Positions 56,452 through 64,000 of a stretch of DNA of 64,000 nucleotides are shown here, one piece after another. A model generated the notes under the pieces. It worked only from the letters and a program-made list of their open reading frames with translations. It searched no databases and had not been told where the DNA came from. How positions within the stretch are numbered: the first letter of the stretch is position 1; the number at the start of each line of letters is the position of its first letter. The translations under genes and the position numbers were made by a program. Source of the stretch: Tubulanus polymorphus (taxonomy: Eukaryota; Animalia; Nemertea); NCBI RefSeq assembly GCF_964204645.1, contig NC_134032.1, positions 16,425,337 to 16,489,336 of the forward strand, in the 5' to 3' direction.

Positions 56452-57847
56452 ACTACTAATTACTTAATTACAATTAACAACATAATCTTTAAATACAATC
56501 AGCTGTTTTTTCCTTTTTGCAGTAAAAAATCAAACACAGACCTCGAGTATCTGAAAAACTGTGACGTCATACGTTTACTAATCACGTGACATAGATGTTA
56601 ATATCACATGGCGTCGTCGAAAGCTACTAATCACGTGACATACGTCATATCTCTCATGACGCCATGTATCGAATAATCACGTGACTACGCAGATTAGGGG
56701 CAGGCGAGTTGAATTTAACCCCATGACTAACAATGTGAACCATGACCTGAAATCTACAGGGTTTTTCTCTATATTTTTACTATATACATGTTTTTTCGTT
56801 GATATTTTTCTAATGAGTGTCTGATTTTATAACGTATCGATGTAAGGGTTTTCACTTGAAGGTATAAATTAAAAATATAACATAAAATATCTATTACAAA
56901 TTGATAAATAAACTACATGTATATTTGAATAAATGTTCTAATTACAAGTAGAATGATTCCGTTTTTTATTTCATATTTCTCCCGTCTTGGTATTACCTTC
57001 TCGATGAGTGCTGCCCTCTAGTGGTGCCCTCTAGTTCAGCAGTTTGACTAGAGTTTATCTAATATTACTAGACATCTTCGAATGCTAACATATAATTCTT
57101 ACTCTCAGTGTCATTTGGGGAATTCATCGCATTACTGAAATCATGTCTATTTTTTGGTTCAAATTTATGATTCCAATCCAATTTACAAAGTGTTAGTCAT
57201 TTTGATAAACCATTAGCACTGATGAAGTCAGTCTCTGGGGATGACGACATTTCACACATATAAACGGTTTTAATGATGTTGAAAGGATGCAGGTTACAGG
57301 CTACAGATTGTCTGAAGGGTTTCAGGTTCCAGGCTGTAGATTGTCTGGAAGGAATGCAGGCCCCAGGCTGTAGATTGTCTGAAGGGATGCAGGCTCCAGG
57401 CTGTAGATTGTCTGAAGGGATGCCGGCTCCAGGCTACAGATTGCGATTCTGTGATTTTTGAAAACACTCCCGATATTCAGATCGTAAAACCAGTAAATCT
57501 AAAATATGTCAAAACCTAATTTATTAATAATTTGCCGATATAAATATTAGAGAAAATGTTACATCATTTTCACAATAATACATTCTAGTTAAACTGGTGC
57601 ATATAGTATAGACGAGCCAGAGACTGCGGGGTCCGGTAACATGGCGGCGAGACGAGCCAGAACTGCACCGACAAGCTTAGCTTTATCTATGGCTCCCCTG
57701 CTGTTATTTTACCTAAACGTATATAAACAAGATCATAATGTCTATATTATCAAAATTGTAATTGTATTCATTATATATTGAGGTTGATTATCGAGGAAAT
57801 AAAATGATATGATGATATTATTATACGTCTATCAACTATAGTGAAGT

Positions 57848-58206
57848 GTGTTTCATGTTGTTTAAGCGTGATGTTTCATGTTGTTTAAGCGTGATGTTTC
57901 ATGTTGTTTAAGCGTGATGTTTCATGTTGTTTAAGCGTGATGTTTCATGTTGTTTAAGCGTGATGTTTCATGTATTTTAAGCGTGATGTTTCATGTTGTT
58001 TAAGCGTGATGTTTCATGTATTTTAAGCGTGATGTTTCATGTTGTTTAAGCGTGATGTTTCATGTTGTTTATCCCGCGGTGTTTCATGTTGTTTATCCCG
58101 CGGTGTTTCATGTTGTTTATCCCGCGGTATTTCATGTTGTTTATCCCGCGGTGTTTCATGTTGTTTAACCGCGGTGTTTCATGTTGTTTAACCGTGATGT
58201 TTCATT
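57848..58206. repeat. 23/24-bp minisatellite derived from the last laccase codons and stop
   Basis: Sense unit ATGAAACATCACGCTTAAACAAC; the first unit encodes MKHHG-stop. Confidence 0.9.
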
Positions 58207-61200
58207 CGAGCCGCTTTACGAGTGAAGAACGGTGTATAACGACCACATGTCGGGAATGAACTGGGAACATCCCATTCCTCCTGCCCTTCTAACACAACCA
58301 TAGCCATCCCGTCAGCGAGGTGCTCCTCGATGTGACAATGCAGGAACCAAACTCCCGGATTGTCGGCCTTGAAACGAATTACAGCATATCCTCCCTTGGG
58401 AATAAAAATCGTATCCTTCTGAGGCGGGTTATTCAGATTCAAACCCGGGATGTTATCTCCTCCCCACGACGAATTCGCCCACTTGCCCTTATTACAGAAA
58501 TCACCGTCACAGGCAATATCCGGATTCTGGCGGATGTTTTTACCCTTGCTATCCAGAACTGGAAGACCGTATTTCAACACGCTGAAGTGATGGCCGTGTA
58601 GATGTATAGGGTGTTTACCCTTACCCTTACCCATACTCATAAACACCATTTGTATAGTCGAATCTTTGCGGATGTGTAAGTGATGTGTGCACGAACACAA
58701 CTGTTGACTGCCACATTTCATCGGGTCACAGTCGGTCAATCCTGAGTTTGGATTTGTCAAAAGCGACGTCTTGGGGAAAACGAATTTGATACCATTGATC
58801 GAGTGTGGTCCCTCTTTGTTACCGTAACCGGGTTTGCCGAAATTCAGGAAGATATCGTCGGGTGAATCCGGTGTTAAAGCGGGTGCTGCTACTGGCGGGT
58901 AGGAGAGAATTTTATCGAAATCTTTACACACGGTGAAAGCTGGAATCGGTTTTTCATAAAGACAGTTCACATACACGCATCGAGTAGTCGCGGAACAGGC
59001 TATGGGCTTACTGGTTTTGGCAACCGGGTCAGAGTCCGGAGCAGTGCGGTACCGTAAAATAGCGTCAACCGACCAGCCGTTCTTATTCATGGCTCTGATC
59101 CAGTAATTAGCTATCGGTTGATCGGTCGTCACGACGATATCGTATCGTTCGCCAGCACTGACGCCAAGAGATGTCGCTTTGAACGGTACGATATCAGCGC
59201 CATCTGACGCAATTACCTCGAACCAGTGTCCGTGGATGTGTAGGATGAACTCTTTATCGGCTTGTCCACCGATAATTCGGAAACGGTAACGTTTGTTCGG
59301 TTCGACGACGTAGGTTTCGAGAGGACCGTCGGTTATGAAGGAGCCGTTCTTTGCCGGTAACCGTCCCTTGCCGTTAATTAAGCCACCTTCGAAATTCTTG
59401 AATTGATCAGTCGTGTTATACCTGCAATATATCATTGATTACGTTCAATTAGAAATATGTATTATTCTGATCAACAGTTGTGCATCTTATGATTTTAAAA
59501 GGAAAGTTTTTGATGAAATAAATAGAATAAATTGAATATAAATTGAATATAAATTGAATATAAATTGAATATATTGAATATATACTTGTCTCCGAGAATT
59601 TCGTTCAATTCGCCTTGACTTTTATACAAGAACCATTCGTTAGCTCCGTATCGACGATTCCAAACTGCCAATAACAGAACGAAATCTCCGTCATAGTGAA
59701 CCGGTGGGTTCTTCTTATGAACGATCAGAGGTCCGAACATACCATCACCCATCTGAAAGCCGACGTGTGCGTGATACCAGTGTGTGCCGTGCGGTGAGGC
59801 GTACACGGGACTAGTAACCACCAGACTAGGAGCTATGGGACACATGTTTATGAATCCGGTACCGTCGAAGTAAGCGGTAGATTTCGAGTGAAGCCCGTGC
59901 CAATGAATCGTCGTAGCGTCGCTGAACATATTGTTATGGACGTTAATGATAAGTTTCTGACCCTCGTAGACGTCTAGACGCGGCCCGGGTAGAGTTCCGT
60001 TTATAACAACAGCTCGACGAGGGACGAAATATGAATCACCGACAATCACCTGAAAAATCAATCGATAATAAACAAACAACCCCCAATAATAAATAGGTTT
60101 GAGAGTTAAAATGGCCGCAGTGGATAACATGGCCGCTGTGGATAACATGGCCGCTGTGGATAACATGGCCGCTGTGGATAACATGGCCGCTGTGGATAAC
60201 ATGGCCGCTGTGGATAACATGGCCGCTGTGGAAAACATGGCCCGCTGTGGATAACATGGCCGCTGTGGATAACATGGCCGCTGTGGATAACATGGCCGCT
60301 GTGGATAACATGGCCGCTGTGGATAACATGGCCGCTGTGGATAACATGGCCGCTGTGGATAACATGGCCGCTGTGGATAACATGGCCGCTGTGGAAAACA
60401 TGGCCCGCTGTGGATAACATGGCCGCTGTGGATAACATGGCCGCTGTGGATAACATGGCCGCTGTGGATAACATGGCCGCTGTGGATAACATGGCCGCTG
60501 TGGATAACGAACTGATTAGAAAAAAGCGAAATATTTTTCTAACCTTGTTTGGATCAACTGGGACGCCTTTCGGGTCGTATAGTTTACCGTTACGCGCCAC
60601 TAGAAGTTGTTGATTATAAACCATTGTTAGCTTCTCCTCGACAACCAGTGTAATCACACAAACCGGATCTTCCGGTTTACACGTGCTAGGGTGTATCGGT
60701 TTGTACTTTTTCGCCGGAGCTGAAATCAGAACAGGTTATTCGTCTATGACGTCATAGGACAGTTGCGACTTGTAAAGAAGATTAGAATGAAAATGTTATA
60801 CCTGGTATCCGGTAGGCGGCGTTCCCAGCGCTCATATCCTCTGCCTGCCAATATGGCGGCTCTGTAAAAAAAAAAAAATAGCAAAATCAAATTACTCGCG
60901 TTTCATAAAAAGAATGTAACACTTGAAGAATTATTATTAAATTCACAAGTAACTGATTCGTCACTGAGTCCTTGAGTCACTGAGTCCTTGATTCACTGAG
61001 TCCTTGATTCACTGAGTCCTTGAGTCACTGAGTCCTTGAATCACTGAGTCCTTGATTCACTGAGTCCTTGATTCACTGAGTCCTTGAATCACTGAGTCCT
61101 TGATTCACTGAGTCCTTGATTCACTGAGTCCTTGAGTCACTGAGTCCTTGAATCACTGAGTCCATGAGTCACTGAGTCCTTGATTCACTGAGTCCTTGAA

Positions 61201-62486
61201 TCACTGAGTCCTTGAGTCACTGAGTCCTTGAATCACTGAGTCCTTGAATCACTGAGTCCTTGAATCACTGAGTCCTTGATTCACTGAGACCTTGATTCAC
61301 TGAGTCCTTGAGTCACTGAGTCCTTGAATCACTGAGTCCTTGAATCACTGAGTCCTTGAATCACTGAGTCCTTGAATCACTGAATCACTGAGTGACTGAA
61401 GACTCTAAATTATACTCTATTTCTAAATACAAACATACTTACTACAGTAATCCCAGTTAATATTTCCAGGGAAGAATCCACTGGATGTTGGGCACCAGGT
61501 TTTATCCTTATCTTTCTTTGATTGAACGCACGAAAATCTGATTTCGCCTCCCCAGTAAAACGGGAAATAACACAATTTATCTGTTTCCGTTTCTGCGAAA
61601 ATTAAACAAGAAGAAAATTAAAATAATGATCACAGAATTAGAAACCGTGAACCAGCTCGACACTTACCGGTTTCACTTTTTCTACCAGTCATCCCAGCTA
61701 AAACGAGATTTTACATATCGATTTAAATCAAGTGACATTTATCAGTTTCTAGAAATTTGTCCTGTATTTAAACTATAGTTCACACGCAGTATTTAATCCT
61801 TGTGTGTGAACTATTGTTCGTTGTTCGATCACGTGTTTTTAATTAAAATGAAGTTATTATTGTTTATTATACGTACTACAATAATCCCACGCTGTGCTAT
61901 CATCCGGGTAATCGTCTGAAGTGGCGCACCAATACGCCGTGTCATCTTCACGCGTACACTCATTAGTGTATGTTTCATCTTTATACTTGTATTGTTGCAC
62001 GCAAGTTTTACCTCCACGCGTCCCTGGACACAGATATCAATATTCATCAACTTCATTTACATATGACGTCATTCGCTCGAGATGACCAATAAAACTAATC
62101 GATAGAACATTTCTGACATTTTGAATCGATAATAAGATACTCACTTATGACGTCACCACGAGCTGGAAATACAATCAAAACGAAATTATGAAATTATTCT
62201 TCAAATAGATTTGAAAATTTGAGAAAAATTGAGAAATAAAATTGGAAAATGTATTTGCGTGCACCAAAAACTTATATCTTTAAATATCGAATAATTTCAC
62301 TGTGTGTTGGATGAAAATTGCAGAAATTCAAATGATCTTTTATTAGATTTAAATTATGAAATGTGATATAGTTATTTTAAACGCTTACTTACGATGTTTG
62401 TACAATTTCACCGATCCGGCGTGACCCCATATCACCTCGATCACGTGACAGAGTATGATAACTACAGTCAGCGCATTCACTCGCAT
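58188..62486 (-). CDS. Secreted laccase-type multicopper oxidase with two N-terminal fibronectin type II domains
   Basis: Exons 62486-62393, 62162-62145, 62023-61877, 61697-61668, 61592-61443, 60861-60802, 60719-60544, 60049-59586, 59421-58188. Copper motifs HWHG, WYHAH, HPIHLHGH, HCHIEEHLADGM. Confidence 0.88.
60110..60508. repeat. 18-bp minisatellite (ATAACATGGCCGCTGTGG)n in a laccase intron
   Basis: About 22 copies with an internal higher-order duplication (GAAAACATGGCCC variant occurs twice). Confidence 0.92.
60958..61400. repeat. 16-bp minisatellite (TCACTGAGTCCTTGAD)n in a laccase intron
   Basis: About 27 copies. Confidence 0.92.
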
Positions 62487-64000
62487 TTTGTTGTATCTGA
62501 AATAATGCATCAATCAATTGATTTAAACTGAGCCCAACATATTCACGGCGTGGTGTATCCACGCTTCAGCTACGAATTCCACAATTCAGCTACGAATTCC
62601 ACAATTCAACTACGAATTCCACAGTTCAGCTACGAATTCCACAGTTCAGGACCATCGCCATTCACAGTTAACTCTTAATTCAGTTCTACGAGTTTTGTTT
62701 ATTTACGACCATTTCAAGAGTCAAATCATAATCGAGAACAAACTGTGAACAAGTTTTTACTGACAAGTGTTAAATATCAATCACAATCCGTTAGTTAATG
62801 AATAATATTATTACAATTAAATATTCATTACTGAACATTAAAAACAATTCATAACTAAAAATCCTAAGCGAAATAATGAGTTTGGATTTTTACCAACCTG
62901 AACCTCGATTCAACACGAACAACTAAAAGTAAGAATAATCGAATCATTTATATAGATGAGAGTCACGTGACTGTGGTATCAATGGTAAGATCAGGTGTGA
63001 ACCCTGAGAACTCCACGTGGCCTTGAGCTGTCAAAACGTCGTCGCAAGTAAAGGCATCATTGTGAGATCGAACGCTATTCATAATTCACGAGACGACTAA
63101 TCAATCCCTCGATTATTGAATGCTCAAAAAAGAGAATTGAATGATTTTCGTGCGGGTCTCGTGAAAGTTCAGTTGTCTGGTCTGATTGTCAGAGCAGACA
63201 CAACCTATAGAGCATTCATCGAAAAAAAACTTACCTCAAAGCGTTCAATAGATTGAAAACGTTCACGGGAGGTTTAGCAAATAGACATTGAGTGCCTGGG
63301 GCTCAATTCCTTCCATTTGTTCAAGTTGATTCAAGAATAAATATTTGAATATGCATTTACCATTAAAAAAAAATCGTATGCAAAGGAGAAATGAGTGAAT
63401 TTGATTCCTAATAAACAAATAGTTTTGGTTTTTTCTTACAGCTATAGCCCAACGCACACGTCACCGAAAACATGTTTTTTCCTCGTGAAAAAACGTTTTC
63501 TGAAAAACGTGTTTTCTGTTTCGGCGAAACAATTCTTTTGCCGTGTGCGTTGGGCTTATGACATACTTATGACATACAATAAACTATAGCGGTTTCTAGG
63601 TGTGTGAATTTAAGGAATTAAGGAATCTGGAGGTAACACATAGATTGGAGCTTATAATCCTGTGATTAACATAGTGAACACAATGCGCAGTACTCGAGTA
63701 CCGCGATTTAGGTGCAAGTGTTATTATATAAAAGTACTCCCTTTTTATAACTGTTCAATTCGCACTGTATGCTACCAAATAAAAACCACTTACAGCAACT
63801 AATGGACGATCATAGATAGCAGTAATTTAAAAAAAGAAAATATTCGATAAAAACACGTAATTCAAATAAAGCCTAATAAACGAAAACCGGTTTCTTCAAG
63901 GTCGTTCATTTAAGTCGCGAACGCAAATTCCGAGTAAAGTCTTGTGAAAAAGAAGAAAAGACTCAACTGCATTGATTCCTTTACTCTCTTTATTCGCAGG

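Follow-up and report, generated by a model that had tools for sequence, protein, structure and literature searches.

The question raised by this locus is whether two fibronectin type II (FN2) modules, each encoded by a single small exon, belong to the laccase gene that lies downstream of them, and what such modules might do on an oxidase. The window, that is, the whole stretch of DNA that was analysed, comprises 64,000 nucleotides of contig NC_134032.1 of the nemertean Tubulanus polymorphus (positions 16,425,337 to 16,489,336 of assembly GCF_964204645.1), and positions given below refer to it unless another locus is named. A script check of the sequence found nine GT-AG exons on the minus strand, running from 62486 to 58188, that form one continuous frame (Table 1). 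The coding sequence of 2373 nt specifies 790 amino acids (790 codons and a stop). A signal-peptide exon is followed by an 18-nt mini-exon, the first FN2 module (FN2-1), a 30-nt mini-exon, the second module (FN2-2), a linker exon and three laccase exons, and exons 2 to 6 are all phase 1-1. The initial annotation had proposed that six small minus-strand exons, absent from its track of open reading frames, splice in frame onto the laccase, and that each module occupies one symmetric phase 1-1 exon, of 147 and 150 nt. All coordinates, peptide strings and sizes of the six exons were confirmed, and the script returned the same phases and lengths for the two module exons.

Table 1. Exons of the FN2-laccase gene (LOC141910414), its paralog, and the tandem arrays in and around the gene
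Feature	Coordinates	Strand	Length	Content
Exon 1	62486-62393	-	94 nt	ATG and signal-peptide-like hydrophobic stretch; out phase 1
Exon 2	62162-62145	-	18 nt	Phase 1-1 mini-exon, RGDVI; paralog has 18 nt at the equivalent place
Exon 3	62023-61877	-	147 nt	Phase 1-1; FN2 module 1, GKTCVQQYKY...AWDYC; divergent, QQY instead of FPF
Exon 4	61697-61668	-	30 nt	Phase 1-1 linker mini-exon; paralog likewise 30 nt
Exon 5	61592-61443	-	150 nt	Phase 1-1; FN2 module 2, DKLCYFPFYWGG...NWDYC; canonical C-x-FPF...WC-x-T...W-x-x-C
Exon 6	60861-60802	-	60 nt	Phase 1-1 linker, YRIP at end; paralog exon 72 nt, also with YRIP at end
Exon 7	60719-60544	-	176 nt	Start of laccase body, C-x6-C, VITLVVEEKLTMV; in phase 1, out phase 0
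Exon 8	60049-59586	-	464 nt	Cu-oxidase_3, HWHG and WYHAH copper motifs; Pfam E-value 2.4e-30
Exon 9	59421-58188	-	1234 nt	Cu-oxidase and Cu-oxidase_2, HPIHLHGH and HCHIEEHLADGM, stop; Pfam E-values 9.5e-27 and 4.3e-39
Paralog	L001 4227-7543 = G000:C8:10430226-10433542			NCBI model P0001 (LOC141910001), 588 aa
23-mer x15	57849-58205			Spans the stop codon and the five codons before it; tail ...MKHHG* within the first repeat unit
18-mer x22	60107-60508			Fills intron 7
16-mer x26	60961-61383		423 bp	Satellite filling intron 5
20-mer x4	62565-62649			Just upstream of the start codon

The peptide of exon 1, MRVNALTVVIILCHVIEVIWG followed by HAGSVKLYKH, corresponds to residues 1-31 of the predicted protein. 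Its string agrees with the signal peptide that had been placed upstream of the modules, its residues 5-20 have a mean Kyte-Doolittle hydropathy of 2.4, and the exon is homologous to exon 1 of a paralog described below. No signal peptide belongs to the laccase body itself, and exon 1 supplies the only one available. The same gene is already carried in NCBI and UniProt as "uncharacterized protein LOC141910414" (790 aa; hereafter P0262), which is identical to the translations of the nine exons, mapped onto it consecutively with one split codon between neighbours, and for which the precomputed Pfam matches are fn2 and the three Cu-oxidase families. An independent annotation pipeline thus arrived at the same model, and the architecture is already present in public databases. 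The mini-exon that follows exon 1 contains an RGD within PRGDVI (62146-62160; P0262 residues 33-35), which was considered as an integrin motif; it probably arose by chance and has no such function, because the paralog has APN at this place (AAPNLI).

The enzyme body has the Pfam domains Cu-oxidase_3, Cu-oxidase and Cu-oxidase_2, in that order. The copper motifs lie in P0262 at 274 (HWHG), 316-320 (WYHAH), 650 (HPIHLHGH) and 741 (HCHIEEHLADGM); all four align with those of solved fungal laccases, with Met at the axial position. Since the four motifs are intact, all copper ligands are present, and the predicted product is an animal laccase-type multicopper oxidase with three domains, which would be secreted.

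Scored exon by exon against the Pfam fn2 profile (PF00040; cut-off 22.2 bits), modules 1 and 2 reached 26.3 and 28.5 bits, and the entire protein reached 34.1 bits across two stretches; P0262 matched fn2 and the Cu-oxidase families only, with no gelatinase zinc metalloprotease domain. When both modules were aligned with 20 other FN2 exons from the same genome, the four Cys and two Trp (C, C, WC, W, C) proved invariant in both. The aromatic pocket position, FPF-x-Y in the consensus, reads CYFPFYW in module 2, CVQQYKY in module 1 and CVSQYTY in module 1 of the paralog. Module 1 has QQY in place of FPF and one additional residue before the second Cys, and both oddities are common to the paralog. 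The signature C-x-FPF-x-Y...WC-x-T...W-x-x-C, which the initial annotation had cited as that of FN2, stands in canonical form in module 2 but not in module 1. The GRxDG-type loop of gelatin-binding FN2 modules is kept in neither. In sequence comparisons with the PDB, the tandem region matched the FN2 pairs of MMP-9, fibronectin and MMP-2 (E about 1e-6). AF2 models, guided by an alignment that consisted of FN2 sequences, had a pLDDT of 85 for module 1 and 88 for module 2. In Foldseek comparisons of the models with the PDB, the best among the matches listed were for both modules FN2 modules of solved proteins, with TM-scores by query of 0.6-0.79 and E-values that are weak because each query is shorter than 50 aa; the proteins listed were Factor XII, MMP-2 and MMP-9, fibronectin, PDC-109, Endo180 and the mannose receptor. 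The best match of module 2 was the FnII module of Factor XII (TM 0.76), followed by MMP-2, MMP-9 and fibronectin. By signature, by profile score above the Pfam cut-off and by modelled fold, both modules are FN2 domains, as had been proposed from the signature.

The genome as a whole holds at least 68 fn2 matches, many of which are exons with one module each, arranged in tandem (C9:9.29-9.31 Mb and C1:30.62 Mb are examples). The FN2 family has expanded in this nemertean genome, and its modules are exon-shuffled.

The same contig carries a second laccase at a distance of approximately 6 Mb (G000:C8:10.43 Mb), and 2.5 kb upstream of it, on its own strand, lies an fn2 match. The two genes have seven N-terminal exons and their phases in common, with exon sizes of 106/18/147/30/159/72/176 nt in the paralog versus 94/18/147/30/150/60/176 nt in the window gene. 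Module 2 of the paralog scored 39.1 bits against fn2, and module 1 scored 20.1 bits, just below the cut-off of 22.2. Identity between the copies is 27/48 residues for FN2-1, 22/53 for FN2-2 and 36/58 for exon 7. Exon 7 is the sole match between the two loci at the DNA level, and the introns do not align. Between the copies, the FN2 exons have a pS of 0.76-0.84 and a pN of 0.31-0.32, compared with a pN of 0.29 for laccase exon 7; the silent sites of the FN2 exons are saturated, which makes a dN/dS ratio unusable for them, and pN and pS are given instead. Low pN against saturated pS, together with introns that can no longer be aligned, argues that both FN2 exons have been retained as coding sequence ahead of the laccase in two old copies. 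The exon arrangement is beyond chance, given a paralog in which the seven N-terminal exons recur with equal phases and an identical NCBI model of the window gene. The NCBI model of the paralog itself, P0001, takes as its start a Met inside exon 7, with neither a signal peptide nor an FN2 part; we take this model to be truncated and to give no evidence for an FN2-less product. Six intact exons, both FN2 modules included, lie upstream of its start and are unannotated in that model.

In the public runs assembled over 61421-62540, no transcripts joining the exons were found. The runs that matched the locus, through exon 9, were four (X1-X4), all from one study. Over this interval, X2-X4 yielded a few contigs, of 126-151 letters, which continue into intron DNA and several of which end at GATC; these two properties mark the runs as Hi-C-like DNA. 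Run X5, which dates from 2015, bears the same species label and may be RNA, gave no match over the same interval. We consider it very probable that FN2 exons and laccase exons together make up one gene, and as far as the gene model goes, the FN2-FN2-laccase architecture is genuine.

The surroundings of the gene are repetitive. Four tandem arrays lie in or around it, at 57849-58205, 60107-60508, 60961-61383 and 62565-62649 (Table 1). The C-terminal tail of the paralog is longer and basic, as compared with the tail encoded here within the 23-mer array. A fold-back structure lies at about 63446-63556, approximately 1 kb upstream of the gene, with perfect inverted ends of about 15 nt (AGCCCAACGCACACG ... 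CGTGTGCGTTGGGCT); an Rfam search of 57000-64000, which included the fold-back, returned no match. A plus-strand open reading frame at 54698-55486 matches Lig_chan (PF00060) with 80.8 bits and is thus an exon of a channel of the ionotropic glutamate-receptor type.

The initial annotation had regarded the combination of FN2 and laccase as an architecture not known from the literature. This view stands insofar as no other FN2-laccase was found in the proteins and literature searched, but the protein is already a predicted entry of RefSeq and UniProt with fn2 and Cu-oxidase matches. Among about 240 relatives, P0262 was the only laccase that carries fn2. These comprised 120 matches to an exon 9 query, 88 matches to the 588-aa paralog query and 34 long representatives; the length window applied to the first set left out the 790-aa product itself, and the paralog query returned it. 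The long representatives were taken from the best 150 matches listed by HMMER, run exhaustively against 1.84 billion representatives. A word search with the N-terminal part of P0262 (residues 36-232) recovered P0262 itself only, and the ESM Atlas contained no large cluster combining the fn2 and Cu-oxidase families. The literature searched yielded neither an FN2-laccase nor a relevant nemertean laccase, one of the FN2 queries returning mostly papers on "type III" modules. The FN2-laccase is a lineage-restricted exon-shuffling variant, recorded so far in one species, Tubulanus polymorphus, and its apparent rarity is to be read with the small amount of public palaeonemertean data in mind.

The laccase body also places the fusion in time. 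In a tree of laccase bodies from which the FN2 part was left out, the window gene and its paralog are sisters with an SH-aLRT support of 100, and this pair groups with two Tubulanus laccases that lack FN2 (99); those of Lineus fall elsewhere in the tree. From this placement, the FN2 exons were most likely gained in the ancestor of the two copies, within the Tubulanus lineage. Exon shuffling would have put the FN2 exons into a laccase of this lineage, downstream of the signal peptide and ahead of the enzyme body. This insertion would have preceded the duplication that left two copies on one chromosome-scale contig, and purifying selection has since kept the FN2 exons in both.

On the protein, the FN2 pair is hypothesized to act as a non-catalytic docking module that would attach the oxidase to a matrix outside the cell, probably a collagen-like one, where the docked laccase could oxidise phenolic or catechol groups locally and so bring about cross-linking or tanning. 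The docking idea is drawn from the behaviour of FN2 modules in vertebrate proteins, namely the gelatinases and fibronectin. Taken as a whole, the explanation of one FN2-FN2-laccase gene, shuffled before its duplication and bearing its FN2 pair for matrix docking, appears to us reasonably probable. Docking of the enzyme to extracellular matrix, considered by itself and by analogy, is a tentative proposal that we would call plausible and not yet probable. More doubtful is the specific version in which a collagen-anchored laccase of tubulanids would work on the basement matrix, tube or mucus and form quinone-type cross-links independently of peroxidasin, lysyl oxidase and the insect cuticle laccase.

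The alternative that survives best accepts the gene as real and denies the FN2 pair the part of a matrix anchor: the modules would bind another ligand, or would serve in latency, oligomerisation or sorting of the oxidase. FN2 modules can have such ligands, that of PDC-109 binding phosphorylcholine lipids and the FnII module of Factor XII binding gC1qR, and it is the latter module that module 2 matches best in structure. Between the second and third Cys, module 2 has a Lys-rich loop and module 1 an acidic one, neither being of the gelatin-binding GRxDG type, and FPF is missing from module 1 of both paralogs. The abundance of fn2 matches in the genome (at least 68) further suggests that the uses of FN2 there are probably diverse. 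Against these points, the tandem is matched best in sequence by FN2 pairs that bind collagen, those of MMP-9, fibronectin and MMP-2, and the conserved aromatic positions are retained in module 2. On balance we consider this alternative unlikely, and docking on a matrix remains the preferred reading of the modules.

A further alternative is that the FN2 exons are optional, with a main transcript that skips them, or that stops after exon 5 and yields a short secreted FN2-FN2 protein, so that the laccase would mostly be made without FN2. The symmetry of exons 2-6 would allow any of them to be skipped in frame, read-through of the exon 5 donor meets a stop after 7 codons (...WDYCSKYVCI*), and the NCBI model of the paralog is without the FN2 part. 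This last point loses its force with the truncation of P0001, as seen in its internal Met start and missing signal peptide; moreover, the NCBI model of the window gene includes all nine exons, and the FN2 exons, linkers, phases and order upstream of the laccase are kept in both paralogs. We therefore judge optional FN2 exons to be distinctly improbable as compared with FN2 exons that form a regular part of the product. Finally, that the join is an artefact of prediction, the FN2 exons being remnants or a separate neighbouring gene that merely lies upstream of the laccase, agrees with the absence of RNA evidence from the runs searched but is barely credible, given that order, strand, sizes and phases recur at a paralog with unalignable introns, that the FN2 exons are under constraint at the protein level, that the laccase body lacks a signal peptide of its own, and that intron 5, of only 581 nt and mostly satellite, leaves no room for another gene.

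One gene encoding an FN2-FN2-laccase represents a clean and datable case of exon shuffling, with symmetric phase 1-1 FN2 exons set between the signal peptide and the enzyme, and it places a module of matrix-binding type on an oxidase. If the FN2 pair binds collagen, the gene would offer a handle on the hardening or protection of matrix, tube or mucus in a soft-bodied and poorly studied phylum, as well as a natural template for collagen-targeted laccases.

Among known systems, the closest are the three-domain laccases of molluscs, nemerteans, cnidarians and deuterostome invertebrates, exemplified by Tubulanus P0007, Haliotis P0002 and Lineus P0021. These have the same Cu-oxidase body and copper motifs as the FN2-laccase, share its N-terminal C-x-C...LTM motif and are 40-45% identical to it; they differ in that the signal peptide directly precedes the enzyme body, immediately upstream of the exon-7 motif, and FN2 is absent. 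Two proteins of other organisms carry different additions, P0212 having a CUB domain at its C-terminus together with weak F5/8-C and chitin-binding matches and P0303 having a C-terminal Hint domain, both without FN2, and these fusions demonstrate that laccase bodies of the animal type do acquire accessory modules. Insect laccase-2 is likewise a secreted enzyme, which oxidises catechols and hardens the chitin-protein cuticle, but it has no FN2 and belongs to a different laccase clade. Peroxidasin and the lysyl-oxidase-like proteins join an oxidase to non-catalytic extracellular binding modules and thereby cross-link in the matrix; unlike laccase, they have haem peroxidase and copper amine oxidase folds, and their modules are LRR, Ig and vWC or SRCR domains. 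MMP-2 and MMP-9 are, like the FN2-laccase, secreted enzymes with tandem FN2 modules, they include the best PDB sequence matches of its tandem, and the FN2 repeats of these gelatinases dock the enzyme on denatured collagen. They are zinc metalloproteases with three FN2 modules inside the catalytic domain, whereas the FN2-laccase is an oxidase with two at its N-terminus, and the resemblance is an analogy of design and not a kinship of enzymes.
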